Notes under the pieces: model-generated
Told to the model about the DNA's origin: nothing
Databases searched by the model: none
Seen by the model: the letters and a program-made list of their open reading frames with translations, nothing else
Translations under genes and position numbers: made by a program
Shown: piece after piece, positions 1,662 through 60,975 of the stretch
Layout of the letters: each line of letters starts with the position of its first letter
Numbering within the stretch: position 1 is the first letter of the stretch
Virus record (IMG/VR): IMGVR_UViG_3300042319_002138
Location: 162,304-226,303 of that record
Reading direction: 5' to 3' (one strand)
DNA length: 64,000 nt

Positions 1662-2057
1662 TTATGGAACAAATATTTGTAATTGTCCAGCACTTACAGT
1701 AAAATCAGGTTTTTTCATCACGGTGATTGTGACCAGATTCCAATGATTTGTTTCTAATTTTTCAGGATTAATAATAACATTTAAATTATCACCACCTTCT
1801 CTTGAAACTATAAATCTTCTATTAGGTCTTATTTCATTATCTATAATACTATAAATTATTTCATCTTTAGCATCCTCAAGTAGGTTAATAATGTCATAAT
1901 CATATATTTTTTCACCACTCCCGTGTCTCCATTTTCTTTGTGCTGTATGACCACCTGTATCATGATATAAGTCAAAAGTAAAAGTAATTTCACTACTTAA
2001 CTCATGAAATTTTTCTTCCCTTAAGATAGTTTCTTTTATTAAAGATTTAATATTCAT
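1662..2057 (-). CDS. Hypothetical protein with IKSLIKE...LREE N-terminal tag
   Basis: ORF; ATATTTATA motif upstream on the minus strand. Confidence 0.65.
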   Translation of the reverse strand: MNIKSLIKETILREEKFHELSSEITFTFDLYHDTGGHTAQRKWRHGSGEKIYDYDIINLLEDAKDEIIYSIIDNEIRPNRRFIVSREGGDNLNVIINPEKLETNHWNLVTITVMKKPDFTVSAGQLQIFVP

Positions 2058-2134
2058 ATTTTATAAATATTTATATAAGTATTAAACGATATACTTTTAA
2101 AATAAAATTAATTAAAATTAAAAATAAAAAGGCT

Positions 2135-2464
2135 ATGAAAAAAATTATTGAGTTTGTAAAAAAATATAAAATCTACATTTTATCGGGATTATTATTTATC
2201 TTCTTTTTCCGTTCTTGTATTAAATCAGGTGAGGTAAGAAAGTTGGATAAAATTAAAACTAAAAATGAAAGAGTTATTGATAGTTTAACTTCTGTTGTTA
2301 ACGGACAAAAAGACACTATTAATAATATTTCTGAAGTAATTAGAATGGAAAAAATTAGAGTCCATAGAAATTATGATAATTATATTTCTTCTAAAGACAG
2401 GGGTGACCAATTAATGGAACTCCATATGGTTGTGAAAAAAAATATTAAAGAACTAGAAAAATGA
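2135..2464 (+). CDS. Membrane-anchored coiled-coil protein (possible lipoprotein/spanin-like)
   Basis: N-terminal hydrophobic stretch followed by 'FRSC'. Confidence 0.45.
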   Translation: MKKIIEFVKKYKIYILSGLLFIFFFRSCIKSGEVRKLDKIKTKNERVIDSLTSVVNGQKDTINNISEVIRMEKIRVHRNYDNYISSKDRGDQLMELHMVVKKNIKELEK

Positions 2465-3420
2465 GAAAAATAATTAATTGGGTTAAGGACAACCCAAACA
2501 GAAGTATGTTCTTGTTACCTATTATATTGGTAGCAGGAATTTCTATTTCACACGTTGTTTCTTGGTATGATATTACTAACCCATTTAGTTGGGCAGTTTA
2601 CTTATCAGTCGCTATTGAAATAGGTGCTATGACAGCTTTGGTCGCAGCAACAAATAAAATGAAAGGTGGGGTTTGGTTTATGTTTGGATTGATTACACTA
2701 ATCCAAATGATTGGTAACATATTCTTCTCATTTAAAGAAATTGACGCAAACGGTTCTTTATTTAAATCTTGGGTTGAACTTACGGGTCCACTTTGGGATA
2801 TGATTGGTTCAGATTCTACCGATGTTGTTTCCATGAAAAGATGGTTGGCATTTTTAGAGGGTGGATTACTACCTATTATATCACTAACCTCACTACATTT
2901 CTTTGTTAAGTATGAAAAATCTAATTCCCCAAAAAAGGAAGAGATTTCTCCAAATGAAGAGGTAATTACTGTAAATCAAGTACAAATTGAAGAAACCAAT
3001 TCCCCAAAAGAAGATGAAAACTTGTTTCAAGAAGAGGTTTATTTACCTACAAAGGAAGAGGCTTTAATCGAAATAAATGAGACTCTTAATAAAGAGGTTA
3101 AAAAAGTTTGGGCAAAAGTTGAGGAATTAAGAGAAGAAAGTAAATTACCTGAAACAACAGAAGAGGATGATTCATCTGAACCTACCACTTTAGCTAATTC
3201 TGAATATAGACTAGAAGAAATTAATGAGGAGGATGATGAACAACCATTGTTAGTTGAAGAAGAAAATCCTGAAGATGAAATAATTATTCCCATGACAGGA
3301 GACACTAGAGTAGTTGAAGTTGGAACAGATATTAAAGCTGGAAAAACTTTGGGTGATGAATTAACTAAAAGTTGGAATAGAATAATCAAAAAAAATAACA
3401 CTATCGATAGATTAGGTTAA
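2461..3420 (+). CDS. Multi-pass membrane protein with acidic C-terminal tail
   Basis: 4 hydrophobic segments, then a Glu-rich region. Confidence 0.65.
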   Translation: MRKIINWVKDNPNRSMFLLPIILVAGISISHVVSWYDITNPFSWAVYLSVAIEIGAMTALVAATNKMKGGVWFMFGLITLIQMIGNIFFSFKEIDANGSLFKSWVELTGPLWDMIGSDSTDVVSMKRWLAFLEGGLLPIISLTSLHFFVKYEKSNSPKKEEISPNEEVITVNQVQIEETNSPKEDENLFQEEVYLPTKEEALIEINETLNKEVKKVWAKVEELREESKLPETTEEDDSSEPTTLANSEYRLEEINEEDDEQPLLVEEENPEDEIIIPMTGDTRVVEVGTDIKAGKTLGDELTKSWNRIIKKNNTIDRLG

Positions 3421-4004
3421 TGATTAACGAAATATCATATCTTTTAGGTGAAAATAATTACTACAAACAAACCTACGAAAAAACTCAAATAGTAGTTGGT
3501 CATAATAGTAGAAAAGATATGCGTCACTACCATTCATGGATTAATAGGAGAAATGGTGGTTATAAAAAAACAGCCACCTTCTCAATAGATAAGGATGGTT
3601 CTATTTATAAACATTACGACCCAAAATACTATTCAGATTTTTTAGGTTGTGAACAAGATAAATGTAATATATCAATAGTATTAGTTAACGAAGGTTGGGT
3701 AAAATTAAACGATATGAACGTGTTTGTTGACTGGTTAGGGCATACTTATAGTAAAAATAGTGATTTATTAGAAAAGAATTGGAGGAACTATAAATATTGG
3801 ATAAAATACACCGAAAAACAGTTTGATTCCCTTAATTATTTAATAAATCATTTATGTGAAAACTATAATATTAAAAATAAATTTATTGGTCATAATGTTT
3901 ATGATGAAAATATAGATTTATTTAAAGGAATAACTTTTAGGAGTAATTACTTTAAGGATATAACGGATGTAAGTCCGGCTTTTGAATTTGAAAAAATAAA
4001 ATAA
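3420..4004 (+). CDS. N-acetylmuramoyl-L-alanine amidase-like protein
   Basis: Amidase_2-like layout: 'IVVGHNS', 'FSIDKDGSIY', 'NISIVL', 'IGHNVY...DVSPAF'. Confidence 0.65.
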   Translation: MINEISYLLGENNYYKQTYEKTQIVVGHNSRKDMRHYHSWINRRNGGYKKTATFSIDKDGSIYKHYDPKYYSDFLGCEQDKCNISIVLVNEGWVKLNDMNVFVDWLGHTYSKNSDLLEKNWRNYKYWIKYTEKQFDSLNYLINHLCENYNIKNKFIGHNVYDENIDLFKGITFRSNYFKDITDVSPAFEFEKIK

Positions 4005-4005
4005 A

Positions 4006-4557
4006 ATGGATGATAGAAAATTTTTAGACAAAATTAGAAAATTACAAGAAAGTGGTCAAAAAATTGGTCTAACAGAATCTACTGTAGGTAAATCTACATT
4101 AAAAGACTCTAGTTTTAGAAGACTTTTAAAAGAGTACGAGGAAAATACTAATATACAAACAGTTGAACCTGACGAACAAAGAGACGAAGAAAATAAGTTT
4201 AAAGATACTGTATCTAAATTGGTTAAATTTAACCCAATTAAGGTACATAAAGAAAACGTTGAGTGGTCAGGAAATCTTGTAAGAGAAAAGATTCAATGGA
4301 ACTACTCACTAGATGAAAAAATTGGTTGTTATATTCAATCAATGACAGATGGAGGTACTTCAGCACCAATTCAATTAACGGATGATACTTTAGAAGTTAT
4401 TAAAAAACTTAGAGGTTATTATGATGTATGGAGTGATGAATGGTCAGCAAGATTAACGGGTGGTTCAGCAGAAGAAACAACCGAAGAAACACCAGTAGAA
4501 ACTGCACCCACAGAAGCAGGTACAGAAGGTAAAGAAACAGGAGGATTTGGATTTTAA
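4006..4557 (+). CDS. Hypothetical protein
   Basis: ORF in operon with phage-like composition. Confidence 0.65.
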   Translation: MDDRKFLDKIRKLQESGQKIGLTESTVGKSTLKDSSFRRLLKEYEENTNIQTVEPDEQRDEENKFKDTVSKLVKFNPIKVHKENVEWSGNLVREKIQWNYSLDEKIGCYIQSMTDGGTSAPIQLTDDTLEVIKKLRGYYDVWSDEWSARLTGGSAEETTEETPVETAPTEAGTEGKETGGFGF

Positions 4558-4559
4558 TT

Positions 4560-5366
4560 ATGAAAGGTATTAATTTAAAAGACACCATTTTATTTGGTGG
4601 TATTATGTTTTTAATCATTTTACTTATGATGAGTAGATGTGAAAAAACTAAAATGGAAAAAGACTTGTATGAACAAGTTAGAGCAACAAATAAAGAAATT
4701 GTTAAAAACAGTAAACTAATAAAAGAAAAAGACGGGCAATACTCTAAGTTTGTCAATAATTTCAACGACCAAAAAGATTTACTTAAACAATTAAAGGAAG
4801 AAAATAAAGATTTATATAAAACAATCAAAAAAAGTGATGAAAAACTTTTAATGATTAATAATACATTGATTACACTAGAAGGACAAGTTTCGGAAGGTTT
4901 TGGTAAAATTAATCCTAGTGATAGTAATTTAATTGATTTAAAATTAAAATACCCTAACGACAAAGATTGGTTTATTTCTTGGGATGGTACAGTACATAAG
5001 AAGACAGCTTTCTATAAAGGTGACTGGACTTTTGGTAAATTACCTTTACAGATTATTTTAACTGAAACAGATAAAGGTATATGGAATAGTAGATTAATTG
5101 GACCAGAATGGTTAAAGGTTGATAAAATGGAGGTTAATGCTATTAAACCTGAAGACATTACATCACCATATGTACCACAACCACGTAATTTTGGACTTAT
5201 GTTAGGTGGTGGTTATGTAAAAGGATTTGCTAATCCAACAACTAACGCACTTTCAATAGGTATAGGTGGGTTCTTTAAAAATCATTCAGTAATAGTTAAT
5301 GGAACAACTAATAGTACGATAGGCTTTAATTATTATTACAGATTTGTTACTTTTAAGAAAAAATAA
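4560..5366 (+). CDS. Membrane-anchored coiled-coil protein with beta-rich C-terminus
   Basis: N-terminal TM 'ILFGGIMFLIILLMM' plus 'SRC'. Confidence 0.55.
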   Translation: MKGINLKDTILFGGIMFLIILLMMSRCEKTKMEKDLYEQVRATNKEIVKNSKLIKEKDGQYSKFVNNFNDQKDLLKQLKEENKDLYKTIKKSDEKLLMINNTLITLEGQVSEGFGKINPSDSNLIDLKLKYPNDKDWFISWDGTVHKKTAFYKGDWTFGKLPLQIILTETDKGIWNSRLIGPEWLKVDKMEVNAIKPEDITSPYVPQPRNFGLMLGGGYVKGFANPTTNALSIGIGGFFKNHSVIVNGTTNSTIGFNYYYRFVTFKKK

Positions 5367-5960: not shown

Positions 5961-6230
5961 ATGAAAAGTCTTATTAAACAAGTCCTTAAGGAAGAACTAA
6001 CTCGTGCCGATAAAGCTGAAATTAAAAAAATAGCAAGGACCGAGTTTGAAGACATGCTTAAAAGTTCCAACATCAAATCAAAGATAGAGGATATTGTTAA
6101 AAAACAACTTAAAAACGATAAAGCAACCCAAAAAGAAGTTGCTGATATCACACAAAAAGTATTAGTACAATTCTATAAAACCCTTTGGACTAGAAGAAGT
6201 TTTTGGGCTAATAAATTAGATAACATATAA
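5961..6230 (+). CDS. Hypothetical protein with MKSLIKQVLKEE tag
   Basis: ORF with the shared N-terminal motif. Confidence 0.65.
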   Translation: MKSLIKQVLKEELTRADKAEIKKIARTEFEDMLKSSNIKSKIEDIVKKQLKNDKATQKEVADITQKVLVQFYKTLWTRRSFWANKLDNI

Positions 6231-7883: not shown

Positions 7884-8852
7884 ATGTCAAATAAGATTAA
7901 TAAACTAGTTAAAAAGAACTTAAATACTTTACTTGAAACTAAAGGATTTGAGGATATGGAAGTTGCTTTTGGTGTTAAACACAAAAGTGATAACCTTTCT
8001 GACGCTGAAAAAGGCCAATTTGGTTCAATGGAGTCAATCCAAGACAAAGAAAGTGGTGTTGTTAAATTAGGTACTTCTACTGTACAACCAGCATTAAATA
8101 AAGTACATAAAGAAGATGTGAAAGATGCTGAAGAGTATTACAAAATGGTTTTGGATAGAATGAGAAACTTCCAAAAGACAGATACTTCTGAACCATCACA
8201 AATTGGTGAGGCTTTTAAACCTAAAAAGGTTAATAGAGAAGATGACCAAACAAAAGATTATGATGTATATGATACTGAAGCTTTAGGACCTGGTATGTTA
8301 GCACTAAAATATGATAATGAAGGAACACCTGTTCACGATGAATTCGTGAAAAGACAAGATGAGTTAAACGGTAACGACTCTACATATCTAAAATTAAGAG
8401 GTTATTCAGAAAAGTATTTAAAACACAAATACGGAACACCTGATGAATACCACTACTCACCAAAAGTTAGAACAACTGATAAACCTATTGCTGAATCAGA
8501 TAAAAAATACTCTGACGTTATTGAAGAAAATATATTCAAAACAAAAAGTAAGATAACATCAAAAGAACAGGTTATTAGATTAACAGAAAAGTTACCTTCT
8601 AGAGTTAAGATTGATGAGACAGTATTTGCTGTTACTGACGGTAATAACTATTATAGATTGATTTGGGAAGGTGAAGAAGACGGTGAAGCGGTTATTACAC
8701 ACGAAAAAAATACTAAGGTAGTTAGTGAGTCGATTGATAAAATGAAACATTTGTGGGGTTATAAAGCATCGGATTCTATTTCCACTAAAAACATTGTTAA
8801 AGAAAACGAAGAAGATAAGTTTAAAACATTATTTAGACAAATGAAAAAATAA
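7884..8852 (+). CDS. Hypothetical protein (possible head-associated)
   Basis: GATATTTATA motif upstream; several xxE motifs. Confidence 0.6.
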   Translation: MSNKINKLVKKNLNTLLETKGFEDMEVAFGVKHKSDNLSDAEKGQFGSMESIQDKESGVVKLGTSTVQPALNKVHKEDVKDAEEYYKMVLDRMRNFQKTDTSEPSQIGEAFKPKKVNREDDQTKDYDVYDTEALGPGMLALKYDNEGTPVHDEFVKRQDELNGNDSTYLKLRGYSEKYLKHKYGTPDEYHYSPKVRTTDKPIAESDKKYSDVIEENIFKTKSKITSKEQVIRLTEKLPSRVKIDETVFAVTDGNNYYRLIWEGEEDGEAVITHEKNTKVVSESIDKMKHLWGYKASDSISTKNIVKENEEDKFKTLFRQMKK

Positions 8853-9184: not shown

Positions 9185-9219
9185 GAGGGTTTTTTTATTT
9201 ATAATCATATTTATGTAAT

Positions 9220-9603
9220 ATGAAAAAAGTAATTAGACTTACAGAATTAGATTTAACAAGAATTGTCAAAAGAATTCTTAAAGAAGAGGCTGAAGAAAAA
9301 GTTGAGGTAACATATAGTACTTCACATGGTGATATAACTTATATTGGGCAATTAGGTAGAAACCCTAACGAAGATTTATATTATTTTAAACCAGAGGAAG
9401 GTGGGTTTGAATTTATGTCTAATAGTAGTATGAAACCTAATTGGGGTCTTGAAAAAGAATTTAATAGATTAGTCGGAAAAAAATTAACTGTTGATTATGA
9501 ATATGGTCCTTCTATTAAATTAGGTGGTCAAATAAATCATGGTAAAATGTTTATTAAAGGCCTCTTAAACGGTGAGGAGAATGTTAAAATAAAAAAAATT
9601 TAA
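9220..9603 (+). CDS. Hypothetical protein with MKKVIRLTELDLTRIVKRILKEE tag
   Basis: ORF; ATATTTAT upstream. Confidence 0.65.
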   Translation: MKKVIRLTELDLTRIVKRILKEEAEEKVEVTYSTSHGDITYIGQLGRNPNEDLYYFKPEEGGFEFMSNSSMKPNWGLEKEFNRLVGKKLTVDYEYGPSIKLGGQINHGKMFIKGLLNGEENVKIKKI

Positions 9604-21513: not shown

Positions 21514-21514
21514 A

Positions 21515-22320: not shown

Positions 22321-23226
22321 TTGATGAAAAAAACTATTAGAAAAGTATTAAGAGAAGAACAATTATCATTGTTCGATGATTACGAAGACACCAGTTATAA
22401 AATATGTTCCCATTTTAAAGATGAGGACCAGCAGAACCTATGTTCAAATTTAAATTCTCTTGGTAAATTTTTATATTCAGAGGATGGTTTAGGTTTACAA
22501 AGAATCATTGATTTTAAAACCAACCAAATGAAAAAACTTGTTGATTTAAACAATCAATACCAAGAACCACTAGCTATTTTATGGGAAACAGGTAAATACA
22601 ATCAATCAGGTAGATATGATTATATCTCAAAAGAAAATGACTACTATCAAAATGAGGCCATGAAATCTGTTAATAGAGTTTATGATGATAATGGTAAATG
22701 GGATTCTATTAATAAATTAAACACAAATTATTCTGATTTAGCTGAACTATTAACAGAATTATTTATCAGAGGTAATATGGTAGGTACCCTAAAAGATAAA
22801 AACGCTTTAGGATTAAGGAAGTATCTTATATCTATTAAAGATAAGTTAGAAAGAGTTATAGATAAGTATATAAAATTAGATGAGTTTAAATCTTTCGTAA
22901 GAAATACAAAACACTTATCAAAAATAGGTGAAAAAGCTGAAAACGATGTTAAAAACATTTTAACAAAGGCTCAAATAGATACAGTGTATCAGGGGGGTGA
23001 TGGGGACTTTGTTGATATGATTTTTGGTGTAGACCTTATAGTGAATTCTGGTGGTGAGGTTTATACGATACAAGTTAAGAGTAATGAGATTCAGGCAAAA
23101 GAATCTAGAGGATTAAAAAAATATGGAAAGATTGACTTTACTGCTTCACCTACCGATTATGGTATTATTATGTTTGATATAGATAATAACGAATTAAAAT
23201 TCGATAAAAATGGTGATGAAATCTAA
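22321..23226 (+). CDS. PD-(D/E)xK nuclease-like protein with MKKTIRKVLREE tag
   Basis: 'GEKAE...DMIFGVDLIV...YTIQVK'. Confidence 0.55.
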   Translation: MMKKTIRKVLREEQLSLFDDYEDTSYKICSHFKDEDQQNLCSNLNSLGKFLYSEDGLGLQRIIDFKTNQMKKLVDLNNQYQEPLAILWETGKYNQSGRYDYISKENDYYQNEAMKSVNRVYDDNGKWDSINKLNTNYSDLAELLTELFIRGNMVGTLKDKNALGLRKYLISIKDKLERVIDKYIKLDEFKSFVRNTKHLSKIGEKAENDVKNILTKAQIDTVYQGGDGDFVDMIFGVDLIVNSGGEVYTIQVKSNEIQAKESRGLKKYGKIDFTASPTDYGIIMFDIDNNELKFDKNGDEI

Positions 23227-23870: not shown

Positions 23871-24209
23871 TTGTTAAATGAATTTAACGTGCAAAATAAC
23901 CTTTTCAATAGATTTTTATTGTTATTGGGATTTTTTAAATTTAAAAAAACTGAATCAAAAGATGAGGCTTTTAATAGATTAAAAAAATTAGTTCTTTCTG
24001 TTAAAAATAGGGAGGATTTAATTAATGCTGTTAAACTAATAAACCACTTTAATAAAACTTATGAAATAAATCCTGAATCAGCGGAATTTATTTATTTTAA
24101 CAAAATAGTTAATTTAATGAGATTGATTATTCGTAAAAAACATAAGAAAAGTGGTGACAAAAATGACGAGGGTCAGTGGAAATGCGAAATAGAATTAGAA
24201 AGATATTAA
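23871..24209 (+). CDS. Hypothetical protein
   Basis: ORF; start uncertain. Confidence 0.5.
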   Translation: MLNEFNVQNNLFNRFLLLLGFFKFKKTESKDEAFNRLKKLVLSVKNREDLINAVKLINHFNKTYEINPESAEFIYFNKIVNLMRLIIRKKHKKSGDKNDEGQWKCEIELERY

Positions 24210-25552
24210 AAGAAAATTCTGATGAGTTAGGTAATTGGTTTAATGAAATCGAACCGACCTTTAAAAATTGGAATTTTGAGTTTGATGGTAAACACGAATA
24301 TTGGGTCGATTTAACTAAAATGACTAAAGATGAAATTAGTGTTGTTGCTGATTACATTTTAAAATGTTTACCAAACATTAGTGGGTTACGAAAAACTAAG
24401 TTTAAAAATTTAGGAGATTATGATGGTGTTGTCATTCATTGCGGTAGTGAAGATAATGATTATTATCCCACAGAAAATTATGTATGTTTTATGGAGTTTT
24501 CTTTTGATGATGACGAAGAAAAAAATAATAGTATTTATATTGACGGTAGAGAAGTGTATGAGTACATCAAAATCAAAGAAGAACAAAATTTAAAAGAAAG
24601 TTTAAATTGGTCTGATAAAGACACAATTAATTGGGATAAAGACCCTAATTGGGGTACTGATAACTATTATGGCCCTGACACTAACAATTGGACAACCGAT
24701 ACAGCAAAAAGCCAATGGGTACAAGGTGATGGAGGTGGTGTCTCAAAATCATCAGAAGATACAATGTCAGAAGAAGATGAAATAGAATTTGGTGACGATT
24801 TTGATTGGGCTAAAAATACTGGGGTACAACCAAATTATAATGGACATCCACAAGGTGTGGTTTATCTTCGTGACCATGATGAAATTGATGAATTTTGTGA
24901 TATTATAGAAACTTATAATGGTGGTGAATTACCTAGAGGTAATGTAAGAGAAAATTTACATAGTGGTTTAGAAAATAGTAGGGATGAATTAGAGGGTAGT
25001 GACTATAACCCTTCTAATGCTGTAATATCAGTCTCATTTTTTGTAGAAAAAAACAAACCCAGTTTATTGTCCGTTGGTTATTGGGGTTATGATGTAGCTG
25101 ACAGGTCAATTTTTGAATGGTTAGAAGATGGTGACACATTTAACAATGAATATGAATTATATACCAATTTAAATCAAGTTAAAAAGGTTTTTGAAGATTA
25201 TCAAAATCCTGAATTAGTGAAAGAATCTACTGACCCAGAATGGGAGTGGCTAAATGATGTACCTGTTACAATCCCATTTGAAATGGTTGAATTACATAAA
25301 AAATATAAAATAGAAGTAAAAGAAGATTTACGAGACGCTATTGAGTCATGTGGTGATAATTCAAGAATATTTGTACAAGGGTATTACGGTGTTGTCACCA
25401 AAACTGATACAATATCTTATAATCGAATACATTGTGATTCAGAAATAGAAGATGAAGTTTTTACTTTACAATTATATTTTTATGATATAGATGATAATAA
25501 AATTAGTTACTTTTGGGTATCCTCTAATATGGTAGATTTTTACGAAATATAA
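24182..25552 (+). CDS. Acidic multi-module protein with MRNRIRKILKE tag and internal LKES/VKES repeats
   Basis: Internal 'NLKESLNW' and 'LVKESTDPEWEWL'. Confidence 0.65.
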   Translation: MRNRIRKILKENSDELGNWFNEIEPTFKNWNFEFDGKHEYWVDLTKMTKDEISVVADYILKCLPNISGLRKTKFKNLGDYDGVVIHCGSEDNDYYPTENYVCFMEFSFDDDEEKNNSIYIDGREVYEYIKIKEEQNLKESLNWSDKDTINWDKDPNWGTDNYYGPDTNNWTTDTAKSQWVQGDGGGVSKSSEDTMSEEDEIEFGDDFDWAKNTGVQPNYNGHPQGVVYLRDHDEIDEFCDIIETYNGGELPRGNVRENLHSGLENSRDELEGSDYNPSNAVISVSFFVEKNKPSLLSVGYWGYDVADRSIFEWLEDGDTFNNEYELYTNLNQVKKVFEDYQNPELVKESTDPEWEWLNDVPVTIPFEMVELHKKYKIEVKEDLRDAIESCGDNSRIFVQGYYGVVTKTDTISYNRIHCDSEIEDEVFTLQLYFYDIDDNKISYFWVSSNMVDFYEI

Positions 25553-25980
25553 TGAGAAATTTAATTAAAAAAATATTAAAAGAATCTACTGACCCAGATT
25601 GGGCATGGCTAGATGAGATACCACCAATTATAGATGGTTGGGATTTATATCATAACAAATTAAAAGGTGAATCTTTTACAATAAATCTTAAATCTGAAGT
25701 TATGACTGATGATTGTGTTGATGAATACTTCCCAGATGATGTTGATTATGAATCTGAAGTAAAAGTAATATTAGTAGAAGTGGTACCAAAAATGAGGGTA
25801 AAAACAAATGGTTGTTATACTAAAGAGGTAGAAGTATTATTATTAAAATTTTATGAAAGTACTAATGGACATGATGGGATTAGTGACAATTTTAGTGGTG
25901 AAAAAAATGGGGAGATTGCTAATATGTGTGATAATAGATGTTGGTGGGTTTACCCTGGGTTAATAAACGTAAATTATTAA
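25552..25980 (+). CDS. Acidic protein with MRNLIKKILKESTDPDW tag
   Basis: N-terminus repeats the internal 'KESTDPEWEWL' of the upstream gene. Confidence 0.65.
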   Translation: MRNLIKKILKESTDPDWAWLDEIPPIIDGWDLYHNKLKGESFTINLKSEVMTDDCVDEYFPDDVDYESEVKVILVEVVPKMRVKTNGCYTKEVEVLLLKFYESTNGHDGISDNFSGEKNGEIANMCDNRCWWVYPGLINVNY

Positions 25981-30705: not shown

Positions 30706-31455
30706 ATGAAGTTAATTAGAGAATTCGATGATTTTAGTTGGACTAATATGGGTACACTTAATCCGTTTATGAGTGATGACCCACTTGTTGTTGTATGGTT
30801 AGATAAATCTGCCACTGAATCAGAGATTAATAAATTATATGATATGCTTTTGGAAGTTAATATAGAAATTAGTACATCAAAGTCAGATTTTGTAAAAAGT
30901 TTATTAACATATTCTAGAAATGGGTCTGCATATGTTAAATCTTACATAGCTCAAAATGGTGAAAAAAGAGCTGGGTATGGTGATACAAAAGCTTTATTTG
31001 ATGAACATAAATATTGGAAAGCTATGGAAGATTTAGACGGTAAACCATATATAGAATATAAATTAGGTGATATCTTTAAAGATAGATTAAATGAGTCTGA
31101 AGAGTTAAATTGGATTATAGAAAGTAACCCATCATTTAGAAACAAGATAATTATTTTTGAACCACTGATTATTGAGGATGAGTATAATATTGTTATAGAT
31201 GGTTTATTAGAATTTGATGAGGACCTTTATACCTATAGTGGTAATTTAGAAGAATTAAGACCTTTCACTTCTTATGATTATTTACACCATTTAGTTATAG
31301 GTTTAAATGGTGTAGTAGCTTATGGTGGGGCCAATGAACATAACAACGAAGACTGGGGTGGTTTTATGGATAACGTAGAAAATTACATAGGTAATTATTA
31401 TAAAAATTTTAACAACCCAGAAGTTATTGATGGAAGAAAATATTTTAATCTTTAA
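30706..31455 (+). CDS. Acidic two-module protein (MKLIREFDDFSW; internal RLNESEELNWI)
   Basis: ATATTTATA upstream; shared motif family. Confidence 0.6.
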   Translation: MKLIREFDDFSWTNMGTLNPFMSDDPLVVVWLDKSATESEINKLYDMLLEVNIEISTSKSDFVKSLLTYSRNGSAYVKSYIAQNGEKRAGYGDTKALFDEHKYWKAMEDLDGKPYIEYKLGDIFKDRLNESEELNWIIESNPSFRNKIIIFEPLIIEDEYNIVIDGLLEFDEDLYTYSGNLEELRPFTSYDYLHHLVIGLNGVVAYGGANEHNNEDWGGFMDNVENYIGNYYKNFNNPEVIDGRKYFNL

Positions 31456-44289: not shown

Positions 44290-44356
44290 CTAAAAAAATA
44301 TTAACTACTAGGTTCGATTTTTAATAAACCTTAAATATTTATTAATAAAATATATT

Positions 44357-45640: not shown

Positions 45641-45714
45641 GGTCCTTTAGCTCAGTCGGTTAGAGCAACAGACTCATAATCTGTGGGTCCACGGTTCGAG
45701 CCCGTGAAGGACCA
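45641..45714 (+). tRNA. tRNA(CAU), probably Ile2 (lysidine type)
   Basis: ACAGA-CTCATAA-TCTGT; body resembles bacterial Ile2. Confidence 0.8.
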
Positions 45715-45797
45715 CAATCCCTTTGTATTGACAAGGGGATTTTTATTTTGATATTTAAAAATAATTCCTTATCTTTGTAGAAATAAAATAAGGGACT

Positions 45798-47980: not shown

Positions 47981-47991
47981 GATATTTATTA

Positions 47992-48456
47992 TTGATGAAA
48001 CGATTGATTAAGAAAATTTTAAAAGAGTCTTTTTTGGATGATTTTGGTATGTCATCCAATTATAAATATGATCCTTTAAATTGGGAACAAGATGCTCAAG
48101 ATGTGGGTGGTGCTAAAAAATTAGCAGATGAAATTTATGGTGGTGACTATAATAATTTCTTAGATAGAATTCCACAATTAGAAGAGGAACAACTTAAAAC
48201 TGATACTATAAAGGTAATGACTGTTAACGGTAAAAGCGTTGAGAGGGATTATAGATATGTAATGTATAAAGATGGTGAAAGAGATATTATGGCTTACGAC
48301 CATGACACTAACCAAATGTTTGTAGATGATTCTATTTGGACGTTTTTGAGACAGGGATTTGATCTGAATTCTTCAGAAATATCAGATATATTCCGAGATT
48401 GGATAAAAGAAAATTATGGATTAGACGTTCCTTATATCCATTCACAAAAACTTTAA
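47992..48456 (+). CDS. Hypothetical protein with MKRLIKKILKES tag
   Basis: GATATTTAT upstream. Confidence 0.65.
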   Translation: MMKRLIKKILKESFLDDFGMSSNYKYDPLNWEQDAQDVGGAKKLADEIYGGDYNNFLDRIPQLEEEQLKTDTIKVMTVNGKSVERDYRYVMYKDGERDIMAYDHDTNQMFVDDSIWTFLRQGFDLNSSEISDIFRDWIKENYGLDVPYIHSQKL

Positions 48457-50297: not shown

Positions 50298-50370
50298 TGT
50301 GGGATGGAGAAGTTGGTATCTCAGCAGGCTCATAACCTGAAGGCCGCTGGTTCGAGTCCAGCTCCCGCTA
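50298..50370 (+). tRNA. tRNA-Met(CAU), initiator-like
   Basis: Loop CTCATAA; mismatched 1:72 pair. Confidence 0.85.
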
Positions 50371-50376
50371 CTAATA

Positions 50377-53308: not shown

Positions 53309-53337
53309 AAAAAAGGGACCTTCGGGTCCCCTTTTTT
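53309..53337. terminator. Bidirectional terminator
   Basis: AAAAGGGACC-ttcg-GGTCCCCTTTT. Confidence 0.85.
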
Positions 53338-55231
53338 ATATTCTACTATAAAGGTCTTCTAAAAAATATTCTTTCATATCTGAATTGGTGGCGTAATCAC
53401 TGTAATGTGGGCTTAAATCTTCATTTTCTTCGTCCAAGACATCAGCATAGAAATCATTAAAATAAGACCAATGACCAAATGGTTCATCTATACATTCTTC
53501 ACAAAAACTTTCAAAAGCTTCTATTTCATCTGCATGTTCTGTAGTGTCATAATGTCTTTCAGGGTCATAATATTTTTTACAACTGTCCCAACATCCAGAT
53601 ATTTTGTTTTTTATTACATCTAAAATTAAATCTGTAGATTCAAAAACAAGATTATTATTTTCCCATATAGGTTGACCTAATAAATCTTTAATACTATCTA
53701 CAGCTGTAGTGTAAATACCACTAGATACAGCATTGTTATATGAACTTGCATAAGCCCAACCTAATTCCATTTTTAAATCATCAAACATTTCGTCTTCATT
53801 TATCAGGTCACCCATTAAATCATCATCTAATAACATGTCTTCCCTAAATGGTTCACCGTTTTCCAATTCTCCGTCTATAAAACCACCTTTCCTAATATAT
53901 TTTTTTATATACTCTAAAGCTTTTTGGTCATCTGTAACCAAATCCCACACATTACTTTTCCATTCACGACCAATAAGGTCACTGGCTGAGTAAGGTTCCC
54001 AATAATCTTCATCACAAAAAACAGCTTTGGCTAGATACCTATTCATATAACTGTAACCACCATCATTATCTTCAAATAATCGTATAAGGTCACACCAATC
54101 ACCAGCAATAAAATATAATTTACCACTTCGATATTCTATATCTATAAATTGACCAGCAATATAAGGACCAACTATTTCTATAGGGAATGTTTGGTATCTA
54201 TTATAAATTTGTGCCGGAGTTAAATCAGTTTTTACTTCAATTTCTTTAGCCCAACCCCAATCATCTTCTTCAGATTCATTTAATTTATTTCCTTGGCTGA
54301 CAACTATTAAATCCTCCCAACTGTAACTATTTGTACGACCAATCCATTTAACTTGTATGGGTAAACTATCACCAAAAGTCGTGTAAACGTCATTAATGAT
54401 ACCCACTTCTTCTATTGGATTATCTTCATCGTCGGCATTATAAAATCTTGAATTTTCAGATATTCTAACGTTAAAACCAAGAACATCTGTCAATTCATAA
54501 CCTAAATCTTTAAAATCTTTAAGTGGTGTTTCAATATCACCCCTCATCCAATCAATGTCATCTAATTCTTTAGATTCATTCATTGTTTTTGGTTCTAATG
54601 GTGGACTTAATAAGAACTTTTGATTAATCCAATTTCTCAATTCATTCTCAACAAAATATTCTGGAACTGGTTCTGAATCTGGTTTTGATGCTGCTAATTC
54701 AGATATATATCTAGCAAATTTAATTTTGAATTTTCTATCCATCATATGTAACAAACCATCTGAGATAAAAAATATTTTTGATATGGGGTCTTCGTGAGGG
54801 ATATCACCCTCAACAGCATCCATAACATGAATTAAAGTTCTACCCCACCATTTTTTATAACCTCTAGTATCTTCTAATCCTGGTTTTATTATTTTATTGA
54901 AAGCCCTAATAGAACTACCAACAAAACCGGCCACAGCTATTTGTGGAAAAAACCACGGTATCAATCTTATTAAGGCTTTATAAACCCCCTCACCGATATC
55001 GTATGTTAAATTTTTATTTTGAGCAGTTTCAACTAAAGTTCTTAATTGACCAAAAGTGATTGGGCCCTGTTTTTTACAAAACTGTTCTTTTTCACAAACA
55101 TCTGAAATAACTTTTTGAGATGGAGCAACAACACCCTTAGATGGTTCAGTATGTTTTGGTAAATCTATTAGGTTTGAGTTGTCTAACTCTTCCTCAGTTT
55201 CCTTTAATATTTTTCTAATGATTTCTTTCAT
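53336..55231 (-). CDS. Acidic multi-module protein with MKEIIRKILKE tag and internal NES repeats
   Basis: 'MNESKELDDIDW' and 'KLNESEEDDWGW'. Confidence 0.65.
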   Translation of the reverse strand: MKEIIRKILKETEEELDNSNLIDLPKHTEPSKGVVAPSQKVISDVCEKEQFCKKQGPITFGQLRTLVETAQNKNLTYDIGEGVYKALIRLIPWFFPQIAVAGFVGSSIRAFNKIIKPGLEDTRGYKKWWGRTLIHVMDAVEGDIPHEDPISKIFFISDGLLHMMDRKFKIKFARYISELAASKPDSEPVPEYFVENELRNWINQKFLLSPPLEPKTMNESKELDDIDWMRGDIETPLKDFKDLGYELTDVLGFNVRISENSRFYNADDEDNPIEEVGIINDVYTTFGDSLPIQVKWIGRTNSYSWEDLIVVSQGNKLNESEEDDWGWAKEIEVKTDLTPAQIYNRYQTFPIEIVGPYIAGQFIDIEYRSGKLYFIAGDWCDLIRLFEDNDGGYSYMNRYLAKAVFCDEDYWEPYSASDLIGREWKSNVWDLVTDDQKALEYIKKYIRKGGFIDGELENGEPFREDMLLDDDLMGDLINEDEMFDDLKMELGWAYASSYNNAVSSGIYTTAVDSIKDLLGQPIWENNNLVFESTDLILDVIKNKISGCWDSCKKYYDPERHYDTTEHADEIEAFESFCEECIDEPFGHWSYFNDFYADVLDEENEDLSPHYSDYATNSDMKEYFLEDLYSRI

Positions 55232-55291
55232 TCTTATATAAATATTTTGCCAAACAAAAAAGTATGCTTATATTTGTATAAATAATAAGTT

Positions 55292-55875: not shown

Positions 55876-57300
55876 TTAAATTTTTGTTGATTTTTCTTTT
55901 ATAGTTTCTAAAACAGAAGTAGGTATATCTGATGTAGATTTACCAATGTAATCATCAAGGAAACCAGATTCAGTTTTAATACCATACATTGAAGTATCAG
56001 GTTGTACTTGTTTTCTTAGTTTCATCATGTTGATTGTTCTATATGATTCTGGGTCTAATGGGTCAACTTTAACTATCTTCTCAACTAAGTCTTCTGGATT
56101 AGATAAGAATACATAGAAAGAAGTTTGACCGTGTTTTGCTCTTTCTTCAGCACTCATAGACCATTTTCTAAACAATACTTTACTATCTGTATTGTTTATT
56201 TGTTTTGCGTCAACTACTTTAGATAATTCATATTTTTGGTCATCTGTCAATTCCTTATTCAAGTCATTCATAACATCAATATTATTAAGAATAGATGGAT
56301 TGAATTTAACTAAAGTCATTTTTTGTAACTCTGTTAAATGTTCTTGCATTTGTTTATAATCATTAGCGTTAACTGTACCTTTGACGTAGTTAGTGATAAA
56401 GTCCATTTTTTGTTTATCATTAAGGTCAGACGCTAAAATACTAAAAGCTTTAGAGTTAAGTCCACCTTTTTTAATAATTTTACTAATCACGTTAGTTTTT
56501 TGTTCAGGTGTAATATAATCTTTAAATTTAGCGTACTCATCAAATTTAGGGTCATCAAGGAAAGAAGCTATTTTTATAGCTAATTTTTTCTTAGTGTGTG
56601 AAGGATTAAAAGCTTCCACAACCGCCATCATATCAGGAGTCACCCAATAAGGTGCGTTACTGTGTGAATCATCTCGTGCATCCCACCAAGTTAAATCTCT
56701 ACCATTACCATCAAATCTCCATTGTAAAGCGTATTTGTAATGTGTACTATCACTATTAACTAAATTATTGTTAATAAAAAAGTAGAAATTTGAGTGTTCA
56801 CTATAGGAGTCAAAATAAGTATTTAAATTATTATCACCACTTTTACCAGCTATACACCACTTAGACCCAGCACCATATTTACATGAAGCTTCAACTGTGA
56901 ATGGTACGTAAATCACAACACCATCTTTGTCATAAATTTTTGTCGCTTCTTTAGAAATTCTTTTGTCTTTTTCATCTTTTAAAGCTTGAGCAACAACATC
57001 ATTTAATTCAGATAAAGATTTATAAGTATTAATATCTTTTTGTTTAATTCTAGGTAATAGTCTATGATAGTCCACTACAGCTTTAGCTATTTGGTCAGCC
57101 ATTGGTATACTGTCATCTTGATTTTTACCTAAAGCGGTTTTAATCATCCAGTCAAGATATTTGTTATTTCCTGATGGGTCAACCTCAACAAACATATCAA
57201 CAAGTTCGGTATGGTCTTCACCATATTTTTTAATTACATCTTCTCTTCTACCTTCTAATAATATAGTAGATTCTAAAATTTGAGATAAGTTAAATTTCAT
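55876..57300 (-). CDS. 'YGAGSKWC' family protein (PcfJ-like) with helical repeats
   Basis: 'DPSGNNKYLDW', 'ASCKYGAGSKWCI'. Confidence 0.6.
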   Translation of the reverse strand: MKFNLSQILESTILLEGRREDVIKKYGEDHTELVDMFVEVDPSGNNKYLDWMIKTALGKNQDDSIPMADQIAKAVVDYHRLLPRIKQKDINTYKSLSELNDVVAQALKDEKDKRISKEATKIYDKDGVVIYVPFTVEASCKYGAGSKWCIAGKSGDNNLNTYFDSYSEHSNFYFFINNNLVNSDSTHYKYALQWRFDGNGRDLTWWDARDDSHSNAPYWVTPDMMAVVEAFNPSHTKKKLAIKIASFLDDPKFDEYAKFKDYITPEQKTNVISKIIKKGGLNSKAFSILASDLNDKQKMDFITNYVKGTVNANDYKQMQEHLTELQKMTLVKFNPSILNNIDVMNDLNKELTDDQKYELSKVVDAKQINNTDSKVLFRKWSMSAEERAKHGQTSFYVFLSNPEDLVEKIVKVDPLDPESYRTINMMKLRKQVQPDTSMYGIKTESGFLDDYIGKSTSDIPTSVLETIKEKSTKI

Positions 57301-57301
57301 T

Positions 57302-57712
57302 TTATTTCTTTTTTTTATAAATATCACCTTTCCGCTTAAATTTCCTTAAAACTTTATGTGATTCTTCAGTTATTTTATATCCTTTCCTTATGTTATCCTC
57401 TGAAGGTATAAATCTTAGGTTAGAAATACCCCCTATTTTTTCGGGTGGGATGTTATTATTGTAACCGTAAATTATTGGTACCGTGTGGTCCAAATGATAA
57501 CAGGAAGGTCCCCTAAAACACCGTTTGTCATAGTTTATTAATTTAAAAAGTGGTTGTGATTCAGTTATAACCCATACTTTTATATAATAAAGTCTTTTTT
57601 CTAAATCTTTTATAGCATTTAATTTACGTTTTTTGAGGTGTGGGTTTTTTCTAACCAAGACTCTACATTCCTGAATTAACTCAAGGTCCTTTTTACTTTT
57701 AGGTATAGCCAT
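57302..57712 (-). CDS. HNH-like nuclease
   Basis: 'YHLDHTVPI...ISNLRFIPSEDNIRKG'. Confidence 0.6.
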   Translation of the reverse strand: MAIPKSKKDLELIQECRVLVRKNPHLKKRKLNAIKDLEKRLYYIKVWVITESQPLFKLINYDKRCFRGPSCYHLDHTVPIIYGYNNNIPPEKIGGISNLRFIPSEDNIRKGYKITEESHKVLRKFKRKGDIYKKKK

Positions 57713-57995: not shown

Positions 57996-58388
57996 GGGGG
58001 TGTTTTTGGATTTGACTGGTTAACGATTGGTAATGGGTAAGCATGTCGTGAAATAATACTATCACGTTAATACACGTATTGAAACTTCAAACGGCGACGT
58101 ATTCGCAAACGCAACTGTAGGTCACTTTGTGACTGAAGGTGCAACAGTAGCTGCCTAATCATATTAGGTGTTACTACGGGGTCGGCAGACATATAACCTA
58201 GCAACAGAAGTCGTAGTTGTGGTGGATTATCATTGAACCCAAAATCGAATGATACCCATTGTTTGTTGATTTACAATGGTAAATAATAAATCAAATATTT
58301 TGTCCATTTAGATTAAAATGGAATAAGCATGTAGAAGACGTTAGTAATGTAACGCAGGACGAGGGTTCGAAACCCTCCACCTCCACCA
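57996..58388 (+). ncRNA. ssrA: tmRNA
   Basis: GGGGGTG/CACCTCC-ACCA acceptor with G3-U70, T arm GAGGGTTCGAAACCCTC, tag ORF 58093-58158 GDVFANATVGHFVTEGATVAA*. Confidence 0.92.
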
Positions 58389-58600: not shown

Positions 58601-58648
58601 GACTCACAGAAATGTGGGTCTTTTTTTTTGTACAGTATATTTATTAAT

Positions 58649-59824
58649 ATGAATATTAAAAAAATTATTTTAGAAGAAATTAAACGTTCACTTTTTGAGG
58701 GTATTGAACATATACAAAATCTTTATAAATCTTGGGCTAATAAGAAAAGTGGTAACCCTGAGGCTGCCATGAAAATAATGGATGATGTAATTGATAATAG
58801 AAGAAGTCTACCAAAAAAAGATTTTGCTAATTACAATTCTTATGAAGAATTATTAAAAGATTTAAATCAAATTAAAAAGGCTAAAGCCCCTGATGATGTT
58901 ACTAAGTTTTATGAAGATAAAGACTTGTTGGTAGTGGCAGCTAATACGTGGGAAGCGTCTTGTAAATATGGTGCGGGTTCTAAATGGTGTACAACTGCTA
59001 AAGATACTAGTTCATACTGGGATAGACATAATACTACTGGAACTGAATTCTTTTGGATTTTTAAAAACAAACCACAGGACGACCCAAATCATAAATTTTC
59101 TTACCATATTAAAGCAGGGGGTGGAACCGATTGGTGTAATGCAGTTAATAATTGTAAAACAAATCCTCAAATTATAATTCATCTACATCCAAAATACGAA
59201 CAAATTATTGAAAAATTAATGGAGTACCACAACTCAAGAAAAATGACGGCATCACCAGAACAAATTGGTCGTATTAATTATAACTATATTAATGATTGGT
59301 TAACTAATAATGGACATGATTTTATTACAACATTTGAGGATTTAATAAATTTTAAGAGTTTTATTGAAAGTCACTCATATTTTATAATAAATAATGAAGT
59401 TATGGATGGATTATTTGACTCACCTGGTTTTGATCTGGAAGAGTTATTACACCTCGGTATGGATAAGGAAGAGTTATATGATATGTTATTACAAGATTTG
59501 AATAATTCACCATTTAATGATTATTATATTGATAGAGATATGTTATTACGAGAATTAACCTATACGGTTAAATTAATATTAGGACAGAAGTATAATATTA
59601 ACCCAGACCTACCCATTGGGGAAGAAATAGAGAGAGTGTTTGGCAGACCTTTAGAAATCTCAGATGTTTTAACTGAAGAAATAGTTGATGAATATGAAGA
59701 AGAATTTAATGAAATATTAGATGAAGTAGTAGGGTTTGAAATGAGTAACCATTATTATAAAGAAGCAGAATTATTTATTGGAGATTATTTAGAAGAATAC
59801 AAAATAAAAAATAATCTTGATTAA
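58649..59824 (+). CDS. 'YGAGSKWC' family protein with acidic C-terminus
   Basis: 'ASCKYGAGSKWCTT'; MNIKKIILEE tag. Confidence 0.6.
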   Translation: MNIKKIILEEIKRSLFEGIEHIQNLYKSWANKKSGNPEAAMKIMDDVIDNRRSLPKKDFANYNSYEELLKDLNQIKKAKAPDDVTKFYEDKDLLVVAANTWEASCKYGAGSKWCTTAKDTSSYWDRHNTTGTEFFWIFKNKPQDDPNHKFSYHIKAGGGTDWCNAVNNCKTNPQIIIHLHPKYEQIIEKLMEYHNSRKMTASPEQIGRINYNYINDWLTNNGHDFITTFEDLINFKSFIESHSYFIINNEVMDGLFDSPGFDLEELLHLGMDKEELYDMLLQDLNNSPFNDYYIDRDMLLRELTYTVKLILGQKYNINPDLPIGEEIERVFGRPLEISDVLTEEIVDEYEEEFNEILDEVVGFEMSNHYYKEAELFIGDYLEEYKIKNNLD

Positions 59825-59849
59825 TTAAAAAAAAGATATTATATTTGTA

Positions 59850-59985
59850 CTGTTGAGTGATTAAACGGTCTCCCCAGGGTAACTAAAATGGGTTGAAGAT
59901 AGTAGTAGAATTAGTTACATCCACTTTTCACCACAAAGTAGCTACGACCCCCTTGATGATAGTACGTAATCATGGGGGTTTTTTT
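59850..59985 (+). ncRNA. Candidate small RNA
   Basis: TATATTTG promoter immediately upstream; GTAACTAA/TTAGTTAC stem; terminator hairpin; no ORF. Confidence 0.4.
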
Positions 59986-60011
59986 ATGCCTATTATATAT
60001 TTATAATAAAA

Positions 60012-60548
60012 ATGAAAAATATAATTAAAAAAATATTAAAGGAATCTGATTTAGATTGGATTAAAGATATTTCTGATGAAGTACCTTCTTGGAGTAATAG
60101 AGTTAAATTACCTATCGAAGATTTAGTGTTTGATTACATGTTAGAAAATACTAATTTATTCAACGAATTATACAGAGAAGGGTATTATTCACCAACGGAA
60201 GAGTATAAATTAAGATTTACACCTGAAGAATGGGATGACTATGGGTTTGACCAATGGGAAAGTGGTGATTGGAAAGAAAATGGTGAATGGGATAATACAC
60301 CTAACCTTACTGATTGGAGTATAATGGAACCACTTTTAAAGGATTGTTCTAAATGGGAACATATGTCACAAGAAAATGTAGATTGGGATTTAGATGCCCA
60401 ATCTTTTACAGATAGACTTATTTGGCAAAGAAAAAGTGATGGTAGATATTTTGGTGCAACTATTTATGGTACATCTTACGATGGTTGGGAAGGTAATGAC
60501 GAATTTTTGAGGGAGATATTCCAAAAGAAAGTAACAATTTTTGTATAG
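60012..60548 (+). CDS. Acidic Trp-rich protein with MKNIIKKILKESDLDWI tag
   Basis: ATATTTATA upstream. Confidence 0.65.
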   Translation: MKNIIKKILKESDLDWIKDISDEVPSWSNRVKLPIEDLVFDYMLENTNLFNELYREGYYSPTEEYKLRFTPEEWDDYGFDQWESGDWKENGEWDNTPNLTDWSIMEPLLKDCSKWEHMSQENVDWDLDAQSFTDRLIWQRKSDGRYFGATIYGTSYDGWEGNDEFLREIFQKKVTIFV

Positions 60549-60552
60549 TATT

Positions 60553-60975
60553 ATGGATAAATTTTTAAGAAAAATAATCAAAGAAGAACTTGACGATTCA
60601 ATGGATTGGATTAAACAACATGCTTTCCATTTGGATTTAATGTCACAAAATAAAAGAAAGATAGAATCATTATCAGAAGTTAAAAAAATATTATTTAATC
60701 CGGCTGTACAAACATTTAGTGAAAAGTTTAAGACTGTGGCATATTATTTAGAGGACATGAATTACATGCCTGAAAATCTTATCTTTGATGAATATCTTTC
60801 TTATATAGAAATAAAAAGACACCCACAAGGTAAAGGTCTTTTTATTAAAAAGGGTAGATATTTTGTTGGACCAACAGTAAGTGATGATGAACTTATTGAA
60901 ATGAGTAAAGAAGTAGGTTCTTTTTGGTTTGAGGAATTTGTTGGCAGTTTTTTACCAAATAGATTATATAGGTAA
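60553..60975 (+). CDS. Protein with MDKFLRKIIKEELDDSMDWI tag
   Basis: Shared N-terminal motif. Confidence 0.6.
   Translation: MDKFLRKIIKEELDDSMDWIKQHAFHLDLMSQNKRKIESLSEVKKILFNPAVQTFSEKFKTVAYYLEDMNYMPENLIFDEYLSYIEIKRHPQGKGLFIKKGRYFVGPTVSDDELIEMSKEVGSFWFEEFVGSFLPNRLYR

Follow-up and report, generated by a model that had tools for sequence, protein, structure and literature searches.

The 64,000-nucleotide stretch analyzed here (positions 162,304 to 226,303 of IMG/VR virus record IMGVR_UViG_3300042319_002138; hereafter, the window) encodes a series of dissimilar proteins that begin with the same short basic peptide, and multiple lines of evidence suggest that this N-terminal tag is probably a T4-type capsid-targeting and protease-processing propeptide, in a new sequence form and with a far larger set of cargo proteins. 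Under this interpretation, the basic amphipathic helix of the tag would bring the attached protein into the core of the assembling prohead, probably via the very acidic scaffold. A gp21-type (S77) prohead protease would then cut after the terminal Glu of the tag, and also at junctions of the form [LIVM]-x-E↓S/Q/D-acidic-DFxW between domains (here and below, the arrow marks the bond after the Glu). The freed, mostly acidic cargo would remain in the head and enter the cell together with the DNA.

A shared N-terminal tag on unrelated proteins

The tag comprises 11 residues with the pattern M-[KR]-x-φ-φ-[KR]-[KR]-φ-φ-x-E (φ, hydrophobic residue; MKxLIKKILKE) and also occurs in an extended form, MKKVIRLTExDLxRIVKRILKE; it is K/R-rich, basic and amphipathic, without a hydrophobic stretch. 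A six-frame scan of the window with a loose 8-residue pattern yielded eight matches, all within residues 1-22 of open reading frames (ORFs), namely those at 5961, 9220, 22324, 25552, 47995, 55231(-), 60012 and 60553 (Table 1). Among the 109 gene products, the first 30 residues contain the core φφ[KR]xφφx[ED] 8 times, whereas the 15,956 internal residues lack it altogether. After residue shuffling of the proteins, the mean count is 0.11 and the highest is 2, so that the shared N-terminal tag family put forward in an earlier note on this DNA is real. Likewise, a degenerate DNA pattern for M[KR]xφI[KR]KI[L/F]KE has four matches in the window compared with none in 100 shuffles.

Among the 11 ORFs that the note had listed as tagged, eight carry the strict core and the one at 24182 departs from it by one position, whereas those at 1662(-), which starts with MNIKSLIKETILREE, and 58649 have weak variants only. 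At least nine further tagged genes of the same phage lie just beyond the end of the window. The extended form is represented by the 9220 ORF (MKKVIRLTELDLTRIVKRILKEE), in which the last eight residues equal the core of the short tag. In an AlphaFold2 (AF2) model of the 47995 protein, built on a 14-sequence alignment, residues 2-16 are helical, with a mean pLDDT (predicted local distance difference test) of ~45-54 versus ~85-95 in the well-modelled cargo parts.

The cargo parts encoded in the window show no BLASTP similarity to each other beyond the N-terminal ~30 residues, and the 127 distinct tagged ORFs collected from IMG/VR group into at least 54 cargo clusters, with no similarity between clusters. 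Moreover, residues 324-631 of the 631-aa protein of the window correspond to a stand-alone tagged protein in a related locus (L031), the tag of which takes the exact place of ...KLNE↓SEEDDWGW in the window protein. Some tagged genes form tandem arrays (L044, L105 and L241 10381-12600), as could be expected if the shared N-terminus had no present function and were simply left over from a common ancestor or from repeated illegitimate recombination. We give this explanation almost no weight, given that the tag is strictly N-terminal, is attached to so many unrelated cargo families and is kept, across many phages, in orthologues with ~45-55% identity in the cargo.

Selection on the tag as a peptide

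Most of the tagged genes are preceded by the motif ATATTTAT, which ends 4-7 nt before the ATG, compared with 12-24 nt for untagged genes. The window contains 31 copies of this motif, ~22 of them just upstream of gene starts, and most of the respective genes, including the lysozyme gene, a fibre-like operon and the gene for a CHU_C protein (a domain of the type IX secretion system, T9SS), are untagged. Thus, ATATTTAT is a general promoter-like motif: the statement of the earlier note that most tagged ORFs follow a ATATTTATA motif is only partly right, the motif not being specific to them, and a tag-specific promoter was rejected given the many untagged genes behind it. In two relatives, ATATTTAT stands before the capsid gene, and in another relative before a head-module gene; it may therefore be a late promoter. 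No Shine-Dalgarno-like sequence was evident upstream of the tagged genes inspected, and the short spacing would imply near-leaderless mRNAs.

Conceivably, the selected entity could be a nucleic-acid cassette, that is, a promoter with an A/T-rich, near-leaderless 5' coding stretch that is maintained for translation start or as homology for shuffling, the peptide being a by-product. Promoter-carrying mobile cassettes shuffle genes in T4-type phages; ATATTTAT stands at nearly the same short distance from most tagged genes; the tag codons are almost all A/T-rich; and, in 120 non-redundant strict tags from viral contigs compared with the background of the same genes, the codons of K7-I8-L9 are biased to AAA-ATA-TTA. 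However, codon choice at most tag positions equals the background, with Leu encoded by TTA, CTA, CTT, TTG, CTG and CTC (two-base changes included), and K and R interchange, such that K/R and I/L/V swaps keep the chemistry. Furthermore, among orthologues of one cargo family, the distance between Met and core is 3 residues in the short form (MRNLDRIIKKILREEE...) and ~14 in the extended one (MKKVIKLSESKLTELVKRIMSEQ...); tagged genes inside operons (25552 and 60553 in the window, others in L044 and L105) lack ATATTTAT; and the internal junctions described below retain only φxE. Together, the near-background synonymous codons and the core at two distances from the start indicate that selection acts on the tag as a peptide. 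A translation or mRNA cassette was rejected on the same two grounds, the DNA is not conserved in preference to the peptide in the way of a nucleotide-level mobile regulatory cassette, and we consider the nucleic-acid explanation very improbable.

Occurrence in viral and cellular genomes

The motif scan that had been suggested as a check, run on the window and then on viral contigs, bore out the tag: the matches are N-terminal in the window, and in IMG/VR the degenerate DNA pattern is found in at least 120 stretches (at least 152 hits) on contigs of 4 to 380 kb. Bacterial and archaeal genomes, 596 Gb in total, contain the same pattern in 13 stretches, mostly by chance and in short or out-of-frame ORFs; the credible cases amount to ~3 ORFs, on a 64-kb phage-like contig and a 730-bp contig. 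Therefore, the tag is virus-specific, and host proteins do not use it. A host secretion or sorting signal (Sec, Tat or lipoprotein) was rejected in view of this near absence from cellular genomes and of the missing hydrophobic stretch.

Tag ends and domain junctions resemble prohead protease sites

The capsid-targeting sequence (CTS) of T4 has 10 residues (MKTYQEFIAE in the internal proteins, IPs; PMC8442874), with targeting dependent on residues 4 and 7 and processing on residues 8 and 10, and the gp21 protease cleaves after L/I-X-E (PMC9026906); the term CTS has been applied to the 10-20-residue propeptides of both gp24 and the IPs (PMC5694885). The T4 CTS carries diverse cargo (PMC9026906; PMC5694885; PMC3012670). 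In the clade of phages that carry the tag, the capsid protein contains [LI][LIM]xE↓A/S/T as the predicted site in 58 of 59 distinct sequences, the remaining one having LITE↓N, and the commonest predicted site, LINE↓A, aligns exactly with FLTE65↓A of T4 gp23. The third residue before the bond (P3) is L, I, V or M throughout the tags and the capsid sites. Similar ends are found at the starts of T4 gp24 (MAKINELLRE↓S) and T4 gp22 (MLKEQLIAE↓A), and the scaffolds of the clade start with ...KSIIEEALLE↓A and keep LVKE↓SL near residue 45, both being predicted sites.

Multi-domain tagged proteins contain internal acidic DFxW junctions, most of which follow [LIVM]-x-E. The resulting pattern, [LIVM]-x-E↓S/Q/D-acidic-DFxW, is seen in FLNE↓S, MNE↓S, KLNE↓S, PLKE↓D, YLKE↓S, QLDE↓Q and INE↓Q, and the window has LKE↓S, VKE↓S, MNE↓S and LNE↓S. 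In the 24182 protein, the junction VKE↓STDPEW repeats the tag-cargo junction of the next gene, 25552, and the 30706 protein has an internal LNE↓SEELNW at residue 128; an exception is DEIE↓FGDDFDW in the 24182 protein, which follows E-I-E, without a hydrophobic P3. The internal junctions keep the cleavage-like part only, not the helix, as a design that combines targeting with release predicts.

The tag might instead be a peptide signal of another kind, for chaperone recruitment of the DnaK/DnaJ type, for transient localisation to the membrane or assembly site, or for degradation, in which case the Glu would be no cleavage site. Such a role would fit a basic amphipathic helix, as DnaK sites are classically hydrophobic cores with basic flanks; moreover, genes for DnaJ and an FKBP-type prolyl isomerase are present in the phage (Table 1), and some tag loci encode ClpB-like ATPases. 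However, it leaves unexplained the invariant Glu, free P2 and depleted Asp, the [LIVM]-x-E before the internal junctions, the match to the capsid, scaffold and T4 gp24 sites and the clustering near head genes, and the tag is not used by host proteins. We therefore regard this explanation as unlikely, and return to the capsid-targeting propeptide.

T4-type head modules in tagged relatives

Contextual information connects the tag with T4-type heads. An S77 protease, a T4-type scaffold and a gp23-type capsid protein are seen in tagged relatives, where tagged genes often adjoin head genes. In L093, a gene for a 578-aa gp23-type capsid protein is preceded by an acidic scaffold gene and directly followed, on the same strand, by a strict-tag gene; in L192, the genes for Peptidase_S77 (T4 gp21; 7889-8611), scaffold and capsid are followed by two tagged genes. 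Head-module loci were fetched with the L093 capsid protein, 80 at first and more later, and S77 homologues are present in 101 of 137 related head loci. A Pfam census of 89 large ORFs from tag loci recovered the hallmark families Portal_T4, Gp23, T4-type Terminase_6N and Baseplate_J, and no other capsid or portal family, among the best 25 of 44 families.

Head loci fetched by capsid similarity alone contain ~18 orthologues of a cargo family with the signature RYMFFSNLEQ. In all ~18, the cargo is preceded by φφxxφφxE, the Glu of which never changes while the residue before it varies (M, R, K, N or S), and the tag is kept although the cargo has diverged to ~45-55% identity. Another head-module family, GSYxxPxxPG, carries the tag as well (...KKILKE↓AT), and a ~260-aa protein upstream of the protease in head modules reads ...NVFNNILSE↓G. 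In the head loci, the last tag position is Glu in 38% of N-terminal versus 12% of internal occurrences, whereas the corresponding values for Asp are 3% and 5%.

The phage of the window shares several genes with tagged T4-type relatives, at up to 78% identity; the evidence for a T4-type head of its own comes from these shared genes and from gp23-derived mini-ORFs only. At least six such gp23-piece ORFs exist in this phage, of which three mimic the N-terminal propeptide, one corresponds to a middle piece and two to C-terminal pieces; one of the propeptide mimics keeps QLINE↓V and FPIVRRIY. Such ORFs come after the tagged nuclease-like gene in the window phage, L013 and L103. Gp23-like ORFs of 80-225 aa are widespread (250 representatives at E<1e-10, full-length capsid proteins included). 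Candidate roles for the gp23-piece ORFs are decoys, a second head-targeting route or homing relics.

Cargo and its possible fate

Several leads to the activities of the cargo are available. The C-terminal part of the 22324 protein resembles restriction-endonuclease-like (PD-(D/E)XK) families, and its homologues in L013 and L103 carry strict tags; other leads point to PcfJ-like 'KWC' proteins, leucine-rich repeats (LRR), Fe/Mn superoxide dismutase (SOD) and L5 gp82-like proteins. Matches of cargos to Acb1/2H phosphoesterase and DHH are weak and below threshold. Pfam and PHROGs searches gave nothing useful on the tagged proteins of the window, a homologue search with the 47995 protein found one near-identical match, and the cargo fold in its model has no Protein Data Bank match by Foldseek at E<=0.001. 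The KWC paralogues, for which the atlas lead is PcfJ-like proteins, share ...CKYGAGSKWC... and are encoded at 55876-57327(-), 58649-59824 and 61900-62727 in the window and at 3467-4885 and 15899-16819 in L241. Among their relatives in other phages (L112; L093 983-1741), some have a strict tag, as does the relative of the 58649 protein in L112, and some do not. Overall, the cargo is mostly very acidic, with a median isoelectric point (pI) of 4.7.

Tagged proteins could also reach the prohead as accessory core or scaffold parts, to be degraded, expelled or retained as internal packing, rather than as injected effectors. In T4, gp22, gp67 and gp68 are cut and then leave the head (PMC9026906). The cargo is very acidic, with net charges in the window reaching -62, and thus resembles the scaffolds, with their D+E content of 25-32%; furthermore, the RYMFFSNLEQ, GSYxxPxxPG and ~260-aa protease-upstream families are conserved residents of head modules. 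Against such a fate, many cargos look enzymatic or ligand-binding (restriction-endonuclease-like, LRR, SOD and PcfJ-like, with weak Acb1/2H and DHH matches), and the cargo differs greatly among phages, as expected of arms-race genes. On balance, we think that an accessory-core role is not likely.

The T4-type capsid-targeting system anticipated in the earlier note is thus favored by its modularity, peptide-level selection and viral distribution, by the S77-encoding T4-type relatives, by the φ-x-E end and by the location beside head modules. Several observations weigh against it. The cargo is acidic, with 81% of the proteins below pI 6, whereas the T4 internal proteins are basic, and this part of the likeness did not stand. 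The residue after the tag Glu (P1') is Glu in 61% of strict tags versus A/S/T at the predicted capsid sites. The K7-I8-L9 codon bias could reflect some constraint on the nucleotide sequence or a recent spread. Because the tag itself served to retrieve the strict-tag set, the invariance of that set is built in. The phage's own head module (protease, scaffold and capsid) was not found within ~20 kb upstream and ~28 kb downstream of the window, nor by a gp23-fragment search, a homologue search and two related-locus scans with the capsid proteins of relatives, and the phage collection holds no cultured relative. Finally, virion packaging, cleavage and injection of the tagged proteins are all inferred.

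A more specific and rather doubtful extension of the capsid-targeting interpretation can be formulated as well. The N-terminal KSIIEEALLE of the scaffold has the same φφxxφφxE spacing as the tag. The tag might, then, be a portable, basic, zipper-like element that pairs with an acidic scaffold helix and brings dozens of proteins per genome, most of them acidic and some of them polyproteins to be cut at LxE↓S-acidic-DFxW by the prohead protease, into the head. Together, these would make up a large, fast-evolving arsenal of pre-made proteins delivered with the DNA; the ORFs that mimic the capsid propeptide would possibly provide a second entry route.

If the capsid-targeting interpretation is correct, the T4 principle extends from a few coliphage internal proteins to a widespread environmental clade of jumbo phages, in which one short tag marks at least 54 cargo families. 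Candidate virion-delivered proteins (nuclease-like, LRR, PcfJ-like and, as weak leads, Acb1-like 2H proteins) could then be listed from metagenomes by sequence only; the tagged cargos would be natural candidates for counter-defence, and the engineering of such phages would gain a compact packaging signal that is released at a defined site. Should the cargos turn out not to be injected effectors, the tag would still be a testable handle on head assembly in uncultured phages.

Genomic setting of the tagged genes

The window, part of a viral contig of 226,303 bp, has a G+C content of ~30%, and the same phage is represented on several other metagenome contigs, one of 195,712 bp. No close DNA or protein relatives were found among 50,697 deposited phages (a 35-aa tag-plus-linker query included), where matches of the 631-aa tagged protein are confined to unannotated megaphage records. 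The coordinates of the tagged genes and of other features are collected in Table 1.

Table 1. Tagged genes, internal junctions and further features of the window and of the same phage (ORF lengths in amino acids; the arrow marks the bond after Glu)
Feature	Coordinates	Strand	Remarks
Weak tag variant, 131 aa, MNIKSLIKETILRE↓E	1662..2057	-	Lacks the strict core; ATATTTAT at 2063-2070
Tagged ORF, 89 aa, MKSLIKQVLKE↓E	5961..6230	+	Strict core; basic cargo
Tagged ORF, 127 aa, extended tag MKKVIRLTELDLTRIVKRILKE↓E	9220..9603	+	Strict core, at residues 15-22
ATATTTAT of the 9220 gene	9207-9214		5 nt before ATG
Tagged ORF, 300 aa, MKKTIRKVLRE↓E	22324..23226	+	Strict core; ATATTTAT at 22311-22318
Tagged ORF, 456 aa, MRNRIRKILKE↓N	24182..25552	+	One position off the strict core; very acidic, multi-domain
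Internal junctions of the 24182 protein	24572-24610; 25217-25243		LKE↓SLNW; VKE↓STDPEW
Tagged ORF, 142 aa, MRNLIKKILKE↓STDPDWAW	25552..25980	+	Strict core and DNA pattern
Probable short-form member, 249 aa, MKLIRE↓FDDFSW	30706..31455	+	Added in this work; ATATTTAT at 30693-30700, 5 nt before ATG
Tagged ORF, 153 aa, MKRLIKKILKE↓S	47995..48456	+	Strict; ATATTTAT at 47982-47989
Tagged ORF, 631 aa, MKEIIRKILKE↓T	53336..55231	-	Strict; ATATTTAT at 55238-55245
Internal junctions of the 631-aa protein	54548-54583; 54257-54283	-	MNE↓SKELDDIDW; LNE↓SEEDDW
KWC-family paralogue	55876..57300	-	Weak N-terminal φφxE only (MKFNLSQILE↓S)
Weak tag variant, 391 aa, MNIKKIILE↓E	58649..59824	+	'KWC' paralogue family; ATATTTAT at 58637-58644
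Tagged ORF, 178 aa, MKNIIKKILKE↓SDLDW	60012..60548	+	Strict; ATATTTAT at 59997-60004
Tagged ORF, 140 aa, MDKFLRKIIKE↓ELDDSMDW	60553..60975	+	Strict; operon gene after 60012
ATATTTAT at short spacing, examples before tagged genes	9207, 22311, 47982, 59997, 55238(-)		
ATATTTAT at long spacing, examples before untagged genes	7861, 9653, 16285, 27049		
Small ORFs matching Pfam Gp23	23230-23466, 23426-23851		Window
Further gp23-piece ORFs of the phage	L300 9600-10001, L006 2118-2432, L241 14162-14770, L299 17104-17604		
DnaJ, full-length	15349-16281		J domain, zinc-finger region, C-terminal domain
FKBP-type prolyl isomerase	17555-17968		
Ro/TROVE-like DUF2828 protein	18574-20016		Followed by the Mom-family genes
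Two adjacent Mom-family genes	20782-22309		
PKD + CHU_C protein	28355-30562	-	
GAF/PAS histidine kinase	31480-33405		Two-component-like set
Second HATPase_c protein	34013-35416		Two-component-like set
Response-regulator receiver	35424-35861		Two-component-like set
Protein without Pfam match	62756-63889	-	C-terminal part matches genes of relatives
tRNA and transfer-messenger RNA (tmRNA) genes	26605-28272, 36800-37896, 43918-44290, 45641-45715, 50298-50371, 57996-58388		

The window encodes 24 tRNA genes, mostly in three clusters with two separate tRNA-Met genes, a tmRNA gene with the tag peptide ANATVGHFVTEGATVAA, and a T4-type lysozyme; the IP genes on the T4 map lie near lysozyme and tRNA genes too. 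Each of two paralogous ORFs (27071-27520 and 44357-44962; 52% identity over 67 aa) adjoins a tRNA cluster and stands behind a ATATTTAT motif. About 5 kb beyond the window end, a 61-aa ORF (L145 15232-15417) has a weak match to ribosomal protein S21. The DUF2828 protein is ~50% identical to its counterparts in KVP40-type vibriophages, and the C-terminal part of the second HATPase_c protein is paralogous to the GAF/PAS kinase (54% identity over 244 aa).

CHU_C (type IX secretion sorting) domains on two proteins of the phage suggest a Bacteroidota host. Homologues of the proteins encoded at 28355-30562(-) and 62756-63889(-) sit just downstream of the capsid gene in the relatives L215 and L219, and a role in head decoration or in fibres is conceivable for the two proteins. 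Two strict-tag genes are also found on L148 (QCKH01000009.1, 63,985 bp), a phage-like contig that is identical with IMGVR_UViG_2716884754_000003 and was deposited within the Prochlorococcus single-cell genome AG-409-L21. The phage may have infected this cell or been attached to it, and tag phages are perhaps not restricted to Bacteroidota hosts.

Relationship to known systems

A literature search found no paper describing the tag, and the closest parallels lie in T4-type phages and in giant phages of the phiKZ/SPN3US type. As in the mobile cassettes of T4-type phages, the tagged genes often have their own promoter-like motif at the start and lie in hyperplastic regions; unlike in those cassettes, conservation here is in the peptide, not in the DNA.

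The propeptides of ejection and inner-body proteins of phiKZ/SPN3US-type giant phages share with the tag the setting of jumbo phages with many head-internal proteins, which are cut after Glu by a gp21-related protease (PMC5694885; PMC9026906). However, cleavage sites of the phiKZ/SPN3US type read S/A/G-x-E or A-x-E and have a small residue at P3, whereas P3 and P4 of the tag are L/I/V, so that the small S, A or G at P3 is not found here. Moreover, those propeptides often exceed 100 residues and have no common sequence, in contrast to the single short peptide shared by the tagged proteins.

Like the CTS of T4 IPI, IPII and IPIII (MKTYQEFIAE), the tag is a short N-terminal peptide on unrelated proteins (PMC9026906; PMC3012670), with an MK start, hydrophobic residues at positions 4 and 7/8 and a φ-x-E end, where gp21 cuts in T4, and in both cases the cargo sets are diverse and differ among related phages. 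The two have only this pattern in common, not sequence similarity: the tag has 11 residues and is strongly basic, whereas the T4 peptide has 10 and is net acidic, and the tag has an extended form and is often followed by an acidic DFxW linker. Furthermore, the cargo here is mostly acidic and often large or multi-domain and thus does not fall into the class of small, basic, DNA-associated T4 internal proteins, and ~20 or more tagged genes are present in ~110 kb of this genome compared with 3-4 in T4.

The tag resembles the T4 gp24 propeptide more closely than the IP CTS. The ...LLRE↓S end of the gp24 propeptide recurs unchanged in tags of relatives (for example, MDNLIKKLLRE↓S and MKTLIQKLLRE↓S), just as the gp23 maturation site FLTE65↓A aligns with the LINE↓A of the clade. 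The gp24, gp23 and gp22 sites of T4 are located on single conserved structural proteins, whereas the peptide described here is a portable tag distributed over dozens of genes.

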